A DNA stretch of 63,153 nt, counting the filler, from Octopus bimaculoides (taxonomy: Eukaryota), in assembly GCF_001194135.2 (NCBI RefSeq). It is 4 parts of 4 records of this genome, joined end to end, with 100 filler letters (N's around TTAATTAATTAA, not from the genome) between each part and the next. Parts side by side here need not be neighbours in the genome. Positions count along the whole stretch, not along the records: positions 28,839 to 53,218 come from NC_068986.1; 3 more parts are not named here. The stretch is one strand, 5' to 3'. How positions within the stretch are numbered: position 1 is the stretch's first letter; each line of letters starts with the position of its first letter. A program made the translations under genes and the position numbers. Below are positions 40,685-48,629 of the stretch, in pieces. A model generated the notes under the pieces. The model was not told the origin of the DNA, did no database searches, and saw nothing but the letters and a program-made list of their open reading frames with translations.

Positions 40685-41237
40685 TGAGTGAGAAAGCAGT
40701 GCATGCCATCAAAGTGACACTGGGGTAGAATATACGAAACCCATTATACCCATCATGACTACCCGTCTGATAAGGGTACACCAGACACATGCATCACAGC
40801 CATATGTGCGCGACATGGTAATCTCATATCGAGACAAACAGCGCATGACCTCGCAGGTGGGGCCCAGTTAGAATCTTCTCCAGGTAGAGTAGCATATCCC
40901 TCAAACGGTCCTTGAATGAGGGTTGTTTCAGGATATTCAATGAAACACCCATGTATCCAAAAGTAAATTATTCAAACCCCAAAAATTCCTCTCAACACAT
41001 GGCTCTGATGCTCCCCCATTACTTCTGCTCGTGATCAGTGATGCATATATCATCAGCTAACAAAGGACATGCTCAACTGGTTAAAGTCAGACAAGTGACA
41101 AGGAAATATATGGTATTGAAAAGAATATTTGCTATAGCCCATCTTTTATACGAAGACAGATCAATGAACATGATAACACTTCCAATGAGTTAAGATCAGA
41201 AGCCACGGGAGCCACTGCCTGGACTGAATCAGGGCAC
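40685..41237 (-). mobile_element. ~555-bp non-coding interspersed element in a (TAA)n array, copy 1
   Basis: tgagtgagaaagcagtgcatgccatcaaagtgacactgggg...aagatcagaagccacgggagccactgcctggactgaatcagggcac; (ATT)n on both sides; homologous to 45252, 45774 and 48071. Confidence 0.9.
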
Positions 41238-41299
41238 TTATTATTATTATTATCATTATTATTATTATTATTATTATTATTATTATTATTATTATTATT

Positions 41300-42727
41300 G
41301 TTTTTTTGACAGCTTCTAACGCTTGAGATGTACTACGGGACCAGCTGTTCACTACCAGTGAACTAAGGTAACACCCATTATTTTTCGAGAACCTTCCGGG
41401 GTATTCGAGCGGTTCCAAGCAGTGCTGTTTTCTGAAAGTGCTCCACTCTTATTCTATCCTCTATTTGTTCCATGTACTTCTCAACGTTTTTACTCACAGT
41501 TCCAGTGCTCCGAAATTTATTGGTACTACTACTACCTTTTTCAGCGACCACAACTGCTTAACCTCTCAAGCTAGTCTGTCATGTCTATCCAGCATTCTTT
41601 GCTTTCTTTCTCAATGAACTCTATGTCTGGTTTCCTATTCTCTATATCATGGTTTCACTGAATCATAAAATCGCTTAGGATCTTTGCATTATCACTTTCG
41701 ATGATGCCTTCAGGTTTATGTTCGTACCACTTTCTTGCTCGGTCAAGTCCATACTTGTCGCAAAGTCTCCAATAGACAAGCCTTGCTATATTGTCATGAC
41801 GACTCTTATATTCCTCCTGGGCTAGTGGCGTACAGTGACTGGTAATATAGCATACGGTTTTAATATTTTGTCAACAAATTCTGCACTTATCACTTTCTGA
41901 CGTATTGTCTGTTTTGTATTTGATGTAATTGGTCCTTAATGCTTGCTCCTGGGCATCACAGATTACAGCCTCTGTTTCCGATTTAAAATCCCTTTTTGTC
42001 ATCCATAGACATCTTCTTTCCCTATGAAATTGTCCATGCATTCTTTTCTTTATCCACCTATTTTCAGTATCATTCATTCTCAAGTGCTTGTACAGTCCTT
42101 TATCTTTGCAATCTTCCATCCTACATAAGCCTGACCTTCTTCCAATAATACTAGCTCTGTGGCATTTTTTACATACCATACTATGTTGTTTTCTTCTGCT
42201 CTAATGCTGTGTTCGCATCTACTCAGTCCTCTTCCCTTTTTTTTCTTGATATATAGAGTCTGGCTGTGTCACTTTTTGGTTGGAGTGTCCCATATCTAGT
42301 AAGTAACTTCCTTGCCGTTCTGTCTAAGTTGTTTAGTCCATCTACTGTCCATGTGATTATCCCTGCTCCATATCTAAGTACCGAAACCATAGCTTCAATC
42401 TTACTCCGTACGTTTAATTTCGACATAAGGATCAGGCTCACTCAGAGCAAGTAATCCACCTTAAATGTTTCTGTCATTTATTTCTCCATCAATTTATTCA
42501 TTTCCAGTATCCCCAAGTACTTATAGCCCGTCTCTTCTATCTGCTTCATAACCTCTCTCTACGGTATCGATAGCCCGTGCATACATTTGATTTTGCCTCT
42601 CTTCAAGACTAACACACTACACTTTTTCAGTCCGAACTTCATTCTCATTTCAGCACTGAAAGTATATACTGTATCAACGAGGGAACTGACTTGGGATTCA
42701 TCTTTACCATAAAGTTTGAGGTCATTC
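41300..42727 (-). mobile_element. 5'-truncated R4/Dong-clade non-LTR retrotransposon (RT C-terminal half, CCHC, REL endonuclease) in (TAA)n
   Basis: DLKLYGKDE...KFGLKKC...YKYLGILE...VLRYGAGII.WT...LDRTARKLLT...SDTARLY...HGQFHR...KSETEA...AQEQALRTN...KCRIC...RHDNIARLVYW.LC.KYGL...WYEHKPEG...RKPDI...LW..KKV.VVPI..GALG...QKTALLGTARI.RKVLEK*; many stops; ~90-nt 3' UTR then (AAT)n. Confidence 0.9.
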
Positions 42728-42910
42728 AATAATAATAATAATTATTATTATTATTATTATTATTATTATTATTATTATTGTTGTTGTTGTTGTTGTTGTT
42801 GTTGTTGTTGTTGTTGTTGTTGTTGTTGTTGTTGTTGTTATTATTATTATTATTATTATTATTATTATTATTATTATTACTATTATTATTACTATTATTA
42901 TTATTATTAT
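42728..42910. repeat. Compound (AAT)4/(ATT)n/(GTT)n/(ATT)n microsatellite
   Basis: Direct reading. Confidence 0.95.
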
Positions 42911-43904
42911 CTGTGGTTTCATTCGTATTGCATGATTTCACTTCCCAAGAGAAAGCAGTTCTGTTTGTCATTTGTTTGAGCATCGAATGTTCTCGTTATT
43001 TAGAGAGAAAAAAGTTTAGCTGTTATAACTTTCATTACTTTTTGGGGTCAATTTGTAGCTTGATTGAAGTTGTAATATCACAGCAAAGGAGACGTTTTAT
43101 TGAGGATTCTGGTTGCTTTGCCATGTGTTAAAATTTTGATCTACTACTGCGCCTTTGCAAACTAATAGCAGTATTCGACCTAATCCTGCTTTTGCCGGTA
43201 ACATTTCAATACATTAGTCAGCACCCAGTTATAATAATCTGGTTTCTATGTACACACTACTCATTTCTTCCGATTTCCCTCATATATAAATATAAATATA
43301 TCTTCACTTGCGCCACTGTCATTCTCGGGACTAGTATAAACGCCATTATATTCTGCATTATGTTCATGAAATGTTTATATAAAATGTTTAACCATTTTAT
43401 GTGTTTTTTCCGTGTCTGATATCATTATATTTCAACGATGTAGCTTCAGCGGTTGTACTATATCATATCAGTGATAGCAAAAGACAACAAGGCGCCGGAT
43501 TAGATGTTTCAGAAAGCAGTGAAATACAGACGGCCAACAACTAAAGTTCACTGGCTAGTATTCCTGCCACTTATAAAAGATAAATGAAACTATTATCTCC
43601 AGAAAACATAAATAATGAGAGTAAGCGGGAATATGAAAATATATGGCAGATGTTATTAGAACGAAGCAACAGCGGAGTGTCGAATAATGTTTGACATCAA
43701 AGTTTATGTAGAGACAAGAAAAAATTCATAGTAACTAACAAATATAAATGAAACAAGCACTCACCGCCATTTCTGTCTCTTGTTTTCTCATCCTCCTTGT
43801 TCACAGGATAATAAATAGCAATCATAATGGTTATACACGAGACAATGGTGATCAACATATAAACAGCAACGACAAACATAACGGCAACAATAATGATAAT
43901 ATTG

Positions 43905-46933: not shown

Positions 46934-46967
46934 TTATTACTATTGTTGTTGTTGTTGTTGTTGTTGC

Positions 46968-47047
46968 TTTTATATGTTTGACTTTTGCTTTTTATTTGTA
47001 CAAGTTAACTTCAAGTCTCACCCTGAGAACTCAGGAGACAACAAGTT
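46968..47047 (-). mobile_element. ~80-bp retroposon 3'-tail fragment, copy 2
   Basis: tatgtttgacttttgctttttatttgtacaagtt...ccctgagaactcaggagacaacaagtt, preceded on + by (GTT)n. Confidence 0.6.
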
Positions 47048-48070
47048 AGTTGCTGGTGTTAAGACTAGGGTGCTACAACCTTGGTTTTGCACAAAGTATT
47101 GTTCTAGAGAATGTCTCTCAAAACATAAATAAATTAGAAGTTTGTTTTCAAAGTGATTTGATTATAAGATGATAGTGTGATTTTAAGGTGACGGTAAAGA
47201 TAATTGCTATTGTGTACATTCAAAACTATCTTTGACAATGTTTACAGATTAAAATGTTTTGAGGATTACAGAGACAATATTTTTCGTAGGATATGAGCAG
47301 TTCCCATAATCAGTATTTTTTTATTTCTTCCATTTTTGGATTTCCTGGTATCTGAGATAGGCAAGCAATCAGCCCTCCTTTGCTATCATTACTAGGGTAC
47401 CTATGCAAACAGGTATTGTTTTAGTATTGAGGTCCATTTCGCTAATTAAAGAGAGGGAAGAGAACTGATTGGATGAGAACACAGCATTAAATCAGAAGAA
47501 AACAGCATAGTATAGTATGTAAAATATGCTACAGAACCACTAGTATTGGAAGTAAGAAAGTCAGGCTTGTTACCCAAACTTCAATAGCCTACAGCGAAAA
47601 TTACATGTAATACATTTGTTTAACCGGTTTTCGAAGGCATTCATAAATGTTTTTTTTTCCATTTCATCGTAGTAAACATCCATGGTTACCAAAAACAAAA
47701 AAAAAGCAGTTTCGACATGGCTTCGGTGCTTCAAAAAGTTGTTGATTTTAGACACAAAATCAAAAGTTTCTCGAATACAGGAACTTCAACTTTTTTAAAC
47801 AGGGCCATCCAGCCACTCCGAAATTTTGGCTGTACAACATTTATATCCGCTGCAAATTGAGTTGCATTGGAGAAAATCTTTCGACCTTTCTGTGTACTTT
47901 GTGATGGGGACCCATAAAATACAGGTGTTTTTTTTTTCTAACAGCAAAATCCTGGATAGGCCTTATTAATGAAATTGTCTTCCTCCAATCTCCAGAATTA
48001 TTTTGTCAAGTTCCTCTCTGTAATTGGGTTATTGATGTTGTTGTTGTTTGACGGCGTATATCATTATTAT

Positions 48071-48629
48071 TGAGTGAGAGAGCAGTGCATGCCATCAAAG
48101 TGACTCTGGGGTAAAATATACGAAGCCCATTACACCCATCATGACTACCCATCTGATAAGAGTACACCAGTCACATGCATTACAACCATATGTGCGCGAC
48201 ATGGTGATCTCACATCAAACTAAACGGCGCATGACCTCGCAGGTGGGGCCCAGTTAGAATTTTCTTCAGGTCGGGTAGCCCATTCCGCTCAAAACGTCCC
48301 TGAATAAGATTCGTTTAAGGATGTTGAACAAAACACCTATGTTTCCAAAGATGAATTATTTCAACCCCCAAAGAATTCCTCTCAACACATGGCTATAATG
48401 CTCCCCCACTATTTCTGCTCATGATCAGAGATGCACATATCGTCAGCCACCAAAGGACATGCTCAACTGGTTAAGGTCAAACAACTGACAAGCAAATCTG
48501 TGGTATTGAGCCGAATATTTGCTGTAGCCCATCTTTTATACCAAGACAAAACAATGTACATGATAACACTTCCAATCAATTAAGATCAGAAGCCATGAGA
48601 GCCACTGCCTGGTACTGTATCCGGACATT
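48071..48629 (-). mobile_element. ~555-bp TAA-associated element, copy 4
   Basis: cattattat|tgagtgagagagcagtgcatgcc...gccatgagagccactgcctggtactgtatccggacatt|(ATT)~28. Confidence 0.92.

Follow-up and report, generated by a model that had tools for sequence, protein, structure and literature searches.

A non-coding repeat family of Octopus bimaculoides embedded in TAA/ATT microsatellite arrays next to Dong-like LINE relics

Introduction

Which elements land in the triplet microsatellites of a repeat-rich genome, and whose enzymes bring them there? This question is raised by a repeat of ~555 nt in a 63,153-nt stretch of DNA from Octopus bimaculoides (GCF_001194135.2; hereafter, the window), specifically, in the part of the window that comes from NC_068986.1 (positions 28839-53218), an AT-rich, repeat-dense piece of animal DNA with assembly gaps. 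The original prediction, made from the DNA alone, held that a non-coding element present in four copies and confined to (TAA)n arrays is mobilized by the machinery of the adjacent relics of long interspersed elements (LINEs) of the Dong (R4) type. The analysis described here indicates that the element is a discrete, dispersed, non-coding family, for which five loci are known here, and its identification as a non-autonomous retroposon that lands in TAA/ATT arrays is well supported. The assignment of its polarity and of its LINE partner is more tentative and depends on the comparison of two classes of retroposons that share the same arrays.

Copies and ends of the element

The search space for the element was the NC_068986.1 part of the window. 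The copies were compared by pairwise BLASTN and with an nhmmer profile built from the four copies, and the junctions were read base by base. The copies are numbered from left to right on the plus strand, and the strand given for each is the best guess:

40686-41239, minus: copy 1, full length, 554 nt (BLASTN, nhmmer and base reading)
45253-45773, minus: copy 2, left end kept, without the last 24 nt on the right, abuts copy 3
45774-46192, minus: copy 3, without the first 83 nt (plus sense) and the last 18 nt, abuts copy 2
48072-48630, minus: copy 4, full length, 559 nt, nearest to the family majority (7% divergence)

The four copies in the same orientation are those that had been predicted, although the coordinates given at that time include one array base. 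They show 72-86% pairwise identity, with BLASTN E-values from 0 to 3e-59 and nhmmer E-values from 1e-133 to 9e-192; neither method yields a further full copy in the search space, the profile returning these four alone. Compared with the other copies, copy 3 has a 42-nt deletion and a threefold tandem TGTTTAAGGA (45930-45967 and ~46103-46109).

On the plus strand, a full copy reads (ATT)n/GAGTGAGAGAGCAGTGCATGCC ... GCCACTGCCTGG(T)ACTGnATCnGGnCAyTy/(ATT)n, where the slash marks the junction with the array. The left end, (ATT)n/GAGTGAG, is identical in copies 1, 2 and 4 and in a fifth copy elsewhere in the genome, in agreement with the shared stop that had been noticed on the ...ctcactca side, and the left-most 50 nt are the best conserved part of the element (94-96%). 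The opposite end, initially defined to within ~25 bp, turns out to be sharper. The terminal 17-18 nt, ...CTGG(T)ACTGnATCnGGnCAyTy/ATT, are homologous between copies 1 and 4, so that both ends are exact in these two copies (in copy 1, the junctions are ...ATAATT/GAGTGAG on the left and ...GGGCACTT/ATT on the right); copy 3 stops 18 nt short and copy 2 stops 24 nt short. The positions of the right end accordingly vary (558, 557, 540 and 534), and an extra G (minus strand) is present at two of the three right ends. The divergence from the leave-one-out majority is 7-14%, which means tens of millions of years on the repeat scale for Octopus vulgaris (PMC13282606). The relative age of copies 2 and 3 was considered as a clue to the order of their insertion and rejected because the two divergence values, 13.1% and 13.9%, are too alike.

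The fifth copy is recorded in the databases as a protein. The open reading frame (ORF) that runs across the element matches a single database protein, UniRef A0A0L8GJS7 from O. bimaculoides, which is a spurious ORF: the residues ...MACTAFSL are followed by a run of 11 N residues and then by unique residues, that is, by the translation of ...CTCACTC(AAT)11. The flank of this copy is unlike that of every copy in the window, which makes it an independent locus.

The flanks outside the arrays are unrelated between the copies, and the copies are therefore separate insertions rather than products of local duplication; at least four independent insertion events are represented in the window, in addition to the one at the other O. 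bimaculoides locus. Local segmental duplication and the signatures of a DNA transposon were among the outcomes named beforehand as contrary to the original prediction. Spread of the repeat by local duplication or recombination between arrays, or else as a DNA transposon or Helitron with a preference for AT-rich triplets, appears highly improbable. Three insertion events do fall within 8 kb, and arrays could promote unequal exchange, but the copies differ from one another by 14-28%, and neither their flanks nor that of the fifth copy fit such an origin. Miniature inverted-repeat transposable elements (MITEs) and other cut-and-paste DNA transposons are characterized by terminal inverted repeats and a target duplication of fixed length; here, no inverted repeat joins the two ends, and the termini GAGTGAGAGAG... 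and ...GGACATTC show no complementarity. Helitrons are characterized by 5'-TC...CTRR-3' termini, a subterminal hairpin and insertion between A and T; the termini of the element do not conform to this pattern, and no terminal hairpin stands out at its 3' end.

A diverged relative of one end of the element lies between copies 1 and 2:

44449-44567, minus: element-related fragment, a relative of the right-hand ~90 nt in which 33 nt at the terminus are duplicated, with (ATC)n(ATT)n after it

The relationship is supported by BLASTN (E = 1.4e-5) and by the failure of any of 200 dinucleotide shuffles to reach the same score, but the nhmmer E-value is no better than 0.15. The sequence to the left of this fragment shows no relation to the element, so that the module appears joined to a different body. 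This arrangement can be taken in favor of the view that the repeat is no unit of its own but the untranslated end (a 3' untranslated region (UTR), or a 5' UTR with a leader) of a longer LINE seen as truncated pieces, in which case the fragment could derive from the 5' region of a longer relative. Such an origin is unlikely given that copies 1 and 4 share both ends to the base, and copy 2 and the fifth copy share the left one, whereas random truncation would produce no fixed length; furthermore, LINE coding sequence does not adjoin the inner side of any copy.

Beyond these loci, the element has no matches in scans of metagenomes, viruses and prokaryotic genomes, and its k-mers have none in full-text and supplement searches. 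The window's own ORFs are without a match in the protein collection. The Logan contigs that were reached through Dong-like ORFs, each 1-2 kb long, contain no copy of the element, and the long contigs from ENA are non-octopus sequences.

Coding capacity and small-RNA heads

The absence of a conserved ORF, of terminal inverted repeats, of a B box and of a tRNA head were all part of the original prediction, and all are borne out. None of the ORFs of the element has a Pfam match. A 50-amino acid plus-strand ORF of copies 1 and 4 was considered and rejected: it is broken in copies 2 and 3, most of the changes alter amino acids, and it matches no Pfam family. A 35-codon ORF on the minus strand merely extends into the array.

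In the strict sense, a short interspersed element (SINE) is transcribed by RNA polymerase III and has a head derived from a small RNA, with internal A and B boxes. ARAGORN detects no tRNA in the element, Rfam yields no family for the whole piece (E<=1) or for copy 4 by itself (E<=10), and no polymerase III B box or head derived from 5S RNA, small nuclear RNA (snRNA) or another small RNA was found, so that the element is not a strict SINE: it fails on the head (tRNA, 5S, 7SL or snRNA-derived). The other SINE features are present, namely, a length of 554-559 nt (within the range of 80-600), lack of coding capacity and dispersal. Most copies have TTTT runs on each strand.

A 5' ribozyme resembling that of hepatitis delta virus (HDV), suggested as a feature to look for, did not materialize: no ribozyme family of Rfam matches either strand, and the RNA structures predicted at the ends have z-scores from -2.0 to +1.0, with no covariation or compensatory changes. 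The minus-strand 5' end (ATACAGTACCAGGCAGTGG) looks like U1 snRNA, but this similarity was rejected because a 581-nt query has no match in Rfam, even with the threshold relaxed to E<=10. Membership in the CORE-SINEs (for example, octopus OR2, or MIR), which have a conserved CORE domain, was rejected as well; the alignment of AGGGTTGTT..AGGAT..AATGA with part of a MIR consensus, not an authoritative reference, has a score of 24, equal to the 95th percentile of shuffles.

Triplet-array context

All seven preserved ends of the element, four left and three right, abut ATT-type runs, although perfect arrays of this type make up just 3.5% of the piece. The predicted confinement to arrays thus extends to every preserved end. 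The arrays next to the copies, to which no strand is assigned, are:

40668-40685: ATT run left of copy 1, ~18 nt, with non-array DNA on its far side
41240-41299: (ATT)20 separating copy 1 from the 3' end of LINE relic 1
45115-45252: degenerate ATT/ATC array, ~140 nt, left of copy 2
46193-46216: (ATT)4 ATC ATT ATT ATC, separating copy 3 from the 3' end of LINE relic 2
48060-48071: ATC ATT ATT ATT, a 12-nt run left of copy 4
48631-48715: perfect (ATT)28 right of copy 4, beyond which a tRNA-derived SINE begins with its 5' end

The junctions fall between whole triplets throughout, ...ATT/element/ATT..., in four of four cases on the left and in three of three on the right. A templated tail can dictate the phase of one junction, so that it is the constancy of the other one that is informative. 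This constant phase of the second junction, which has a chance probability of ~1/9 to 1/27, hints at sequence-specific cleavage at a fixed position of the repeat.

The arrays themselves are strongly polarized: among the perfect runs of at least four units in the search space, 30 of 31 read ATT on the plus strand. The lone AAT-type run (42728-42742) coincides with the 5' junction of LINE relic 1, which is irregular.

Dong-like LINE relics next to the copies

The DNA between and beside the copies contains remnants of several TAA-tailed LINE families:

41300-42729, minus: LINE relic 1, 5'-truncated, with a frameshifted reverse transcriptase (RT), a CCHC motif, the C-terminus of a restriction-like endonuclease (RLE) and an (AAT)n tail (profile E-values 1e-42 and 3e-50)
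45039-45114, minus: D19a, a short 3' piece, truncated at its 5' end, from a third TAA-tailed family, flanked by arrays on either side
46217-46932, minus: LINE relic 2, from a second Dong-like family, also 5'-truncated and frameshifted, with a CCHC/RLE C-terminus and the 3' end ...AAGAGAT followed by (AAT)n
46968-47060, minus: D19b, a longer copy of the D19 3' end, with an (AAC)n(AAT)n tail

As predicted, copies 1 and 3 are parted from Dong-like elements by a triplet run alone (41240-41299 and 46193-46216, respectively), and these neighbors are minus-strand RT/CCHC/RLE 3' ends with (AAT)n tails. Translation and alignment of the relics reveal the end of the RT followed by the CCHC motif and then by the PD..D..K signature of the RLE, with profile E-values from 1e-34 to 3e-50 for the RT/CCHC/RLE relics. 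A library-wide search yielded 1870 relatives, of which the long ones that were tested contain RVT_1 and, for the most part, zf-RVT; the best matches of a full-length relative among the solved structures (PDB) are R2 proteins, with E = 1e-29 compared with 1e-7 for L1 ORF2. A paralogue of the relics with the same layout is present in Logan contig L005, and this paralogue, as well as relics 1 and 2, has AAT arrays (in its own sense) on both sides. The neighbors of the element are, then, 3' relics of RLE LINEs of the R2 superfamily with (TAA)n tails, that is, Dong-like elements. The name Dong/R4 rests on the architecture, the target and the published annotation of Dong-R4 elements in the octopus (PMC13282606). 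The known target of Dong elements is (TAA)n, a snail being among their hosts (PMC3812793), and Dong-R4 elements are abundant and recently active in Octopus vulgaris (PMC13282606; for octopus abundance, also PMC9115989), so that the layout and the arrays of the relics fit Dong. The element and the Dong-like relics occupy the same arrays in the same triplet phase.

Several further observations pertain to these LINEs. D19a and D19b are 80% identical and have the polarity of the Dong-like relics; no adjoining coding part was confirmed for them. A third Dong-like coding relic at 47269-47422, indicated by weak tblastn matches, was not confirmed by profile and was rejected. A 105-nt inverted copy (85%) of a part of relic 1 (42139-42243) is located at 47448-47552, on the plus strand and distant from the arrays. 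A nearly full-length Dong-like LINE, with (TAA)6 upstream and (CAA)n(AAT)5 downstream, occupies positions 6770-11209 of contig L006 (also found in L007 and L008), one of the non-octopus sequences from ENA, so that a relative in another animal likewise has TAA runs at its borders.

A tRNA-derived SINE in the same arrays

The arrays are shared with yet another retroposon, an octopus tRNA-like SINE that has many copies in the window and recurs in Logan contigs. In all seven copies that were examined, the body ends with ...GGCCTTGTGCC plus ~13 nt, and the tail that comes next is (ATT)n when read in the sense of the SINE, complementary to the tail of Dong. One of these copies lies next to D19a:

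44792-44984, plus: tRNA-SINE, sense-strand tail (ATT)19, arranged tail-to-tail with D19a

The tail-to-tail arrangement of the tRNA-SINE with Dong-like 3' ends is found here (array 44985-45039) and in contigs L005 (655-1005) and L009 (880-1087), with 9-58 nt of array in between, which suggests that the tails of the SINE and the targets of Dong are the same arrays. Two classes of retroposons with opposite polarities, thus, occupy the same arrays. The 5' junctions of the tRNA-SINE are ragged.

Other sites of the tRNA-SINE are at 43810-44112, 29950-30460 and 48718-48960. An assembly gap (an N run, 30568-31272) falls within a cluster of three head-to-tail copies; the source is a draft scaffold.

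Polarity and partner of the element

Retroposition of the element can be envisaged as follows. By target-primed reverse transcription with the enzymes of a LINE, an RNA copy would be turned into DNA directly where a (TAA)n.(TTA)n microsatellite has been nicked, and each copy would thereby become embedded in an array. With chances that we would put slightly short of even, the element reads on the minus strand and is moved by the machinery of Dong/R4-type LINEs. This polarity is favored because the left end is exact in four of four cases and adjoins the best conserved 50 nt, whereas the right end is variable and, in two of three cases, has an extra G on the minus strand: read on that strand, the element would have an exact 3' end, ...CTCTCACTC, with a short (AAT)n tail behind it, and a slightly ragged 5' end. 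In this orientation, the element matches the Dong-like relics both in polarity and in its clean, in-phase junctions, unlike the ragged tRNA-SINE, and its short tails of 12-33 nt (9-62 nt in the Dong-like relics) abut non-array DNA, with longer arrays upstream. The element would have borrowed the RT and the RLE of Dong/R4-type LINEs, which use the same arrays with the same polarity. Copies 1 and 3 might have landed in the tails of two Dong-like LINEs or been joined to them by template jumping, such that the joints consisting of a Dong-like relic, (TAA)n and the element (41240-41299 and 46193-46216) would be a record of tail-targeting or of template jumps of the Dong RT. Similarly, copy 2 would have inserted into the copy 3 tail, deleting a little of the target; the joint between these two is best read as one copy inserted in the tail of the other with the loss of ~100 nt of the target, an explanation that works with either polarity.

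Several observations weigh against this assignment. The 3' ends of relics 1 and 2, of D19 and of the Logan relics show no similarity to either end of the element, although the 3' ends of the three Dong-like families do not resemble one another either, and only five loci are available for the argument. The largest truncations keep the right end, with copy 3 lacking 83 nt on the left and the fragment at 44449-44567 consisting of the right-hand ~120 nt beside an array, which is the pattern of 5' truncation of a plus-strand element. Copies 1 and 4 have longer and purer arrays on the right than on the left. The plus strand of the element is A-rich (A 176, T 134), like the sense strands of the LINEs here. 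Finally, the (ATT)n-tailed tRNA-SINE resides in the same arrays with the opposite polarity and tail-to-tail with Dong 3' ends. In relation to the Dong-like 3' ends, copies 1 and 3 are arranged head-to-tail if the element is on the minus strand and tail-to-tail if it is on the plus strand, and given the geometry of the tRNA-SINE, their adjacency to the Dong relics fits either polarity.

The opposite polarity is accordingly a possible, if somewhat doubtful, solution. Under this alternative, the element would be a plus-strand unit, 5'-GAGTGAG...GGACATTC-3', with an (ATT)n tail like that of the tRNA-SINE, moved by the LINE that serves the tRNA-SINE, for example, one of the RTE type. The (AUU)n tail of its RNA would prime on (AAT)n DNA, the ATT runs on the left would be target-site duplications or residual target, and Dong-like LINEs would have landed later in the (ATT)n tails of the element, giving rise to the tail-to-tail adjacency. 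Copies 1 and 3 with relics 1 and 2 would then share the geometry of the tRNA-SINE, copy 3 and the fragment at 44449-44567 would be copies truncated at the 5' end, and the left runs of 12-33 nt have the size of target duplications, compared with 24-85 nt for the right arrays. An octopus RTE element, RTE-2_OV, has a microsatellite in its 3' UTR (PMC9115989), and the 3' UTRs of RTE elements are known to consist of simple repeats (PMC2887409). However, the 3' end of such an element would vary (18 nt short in copy 3 and 24 nt short in copy 2), an uncommon pattern given that this is where reverse transcription is initiated; its 5' junction would be clean and in phase in four of four cases, at odds with the ragged 5' junctions of the tRNA-SINE; and its 3' end is unlike that of the tRNA-SINE. 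Furthermore, the tail unit of the octopus RTE is not stated in PMC9115989, and no (ATT)n-tailed LINE was seen in the window.

Thus, the part of the original prediction that concerns an array-embedded, non-coding family beside RLE relics stands, whereas minus polarity and mobilization by Dong-like LINEs are held less firmly, in view of the lack of an end match and of the tRNA-SINE geometry that would account equally well for the adjacency.

Relationship to known retroposons

The closest analogy among the known systems is with the short internally deleted elements (SIDEs) of R2, which are likewise short, non-coding, non-autonomous and devoid of a tRNA head; like them, the element would share the site specificity of an RLE LINE partner. 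The differences are substantial. SIDEs share both ends with R2 and carry a 5' HDV-like ribozyme, whereas the element matches no available Dong-like end and no ribozyme was found in it; the target of SIDEs is 28S rDNA and their partner is R2, whereas the target of the element is a microsatellite and its partner would belong to the R4/Dong clade. The name SIDE is therefore not warranted for the element, neither shared termini nor a ribozyme being established for it.

Dong/R4 LINEs (Dong, DongAg, DongBg) insert into (TAA)n in one polarity and have a (TAA)n tail, and the relics flanking the element share their RT-CCHC-RLE organization; the element differs in that it encodes nothing and has no sequence homology to the relics. 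The LP-SINEs of mollusks are short retroposons with a LINE-derived 5' end (PMC4758252). They resemble the element in their host group, in the absence of a tRNA head and in the sharing of modules between families (compare 44449-44567), and differ from it in not having been described as microsatellite-targeting. The octopus tRNA-SINE and microsatellite-tailed RTE elements have in common with the element the same arrays, the microsatellite tails and the location beside Dong-like 3' ends, but the element has no tRNA-like head, shares no body or tail sequence with them and has cleaner 5' junctions. Microsatellite-tailed SINE/RTE pairs have been described (PMC2887409).

The literature searches found no description of a non-autonomous partner for Dong/R4. 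It is conceivable, although on the whole rather less than probable, that Dong/R4 RLE LINEs are parasitized by the present family, which would be head-less and (TAA)n-specific and, as such, the first non-autonomous partner described for this clade. If this partnership is real, the octopus would provide a natural pair of a site-specific RLE LINE and a passenger without a small-RNA head. Such a pair could reveal what the R4/Dong RT recognizes in its template, the tail repeat alone or a structured 3' end, and might shed light on the growth of microsatellite arrays into clusters of nested retroposons. Should the element instead read on the plus strand, SINE-like elements with (ATT)n tails would create the arrays that Dong elements colonize later.

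In practical terms, the family together with its array context explains the shared flanking sequence of octopus ATT/TAA microsatellite loci. For O. vulgaris, 893 'unclassified SINE' families and further 'unknown' ones have been reported (PMC13282606); the present family may well be one of them, still without a name, and its delineation would help classify part of these repeats.

Other features of the region

Three additional features are apparent in the same piece. The region 40219-40648 is a foldback, MITE-like structure with 87-nt arms that are 97% complementary and an apparent TA on each side, and it sits inside the 5' part of a tRNA-SINE copy (40158-40215). By eye, the loop of this foldback (~40420-40500) is tRNA-like; neither ARAGORN nor Rfam gives a match for it. 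The 333-nt segment 44115-44447, between a tRNA-SINE copy and the 120-nt element-related fragment, has an observed to expected CpG ratio of 1.09 and 50% GC in otherwise CpG-poor, AT-rich DNA; its longest frame has no Pfam match. Finally, the region 37900-39260 consists of long GAT/GAG/GAA repeats of an acidic, coding-like type with a GC skew of approximately +0.6 and is bordered by large ATT arrays (37119-37679 and 39894-40155).

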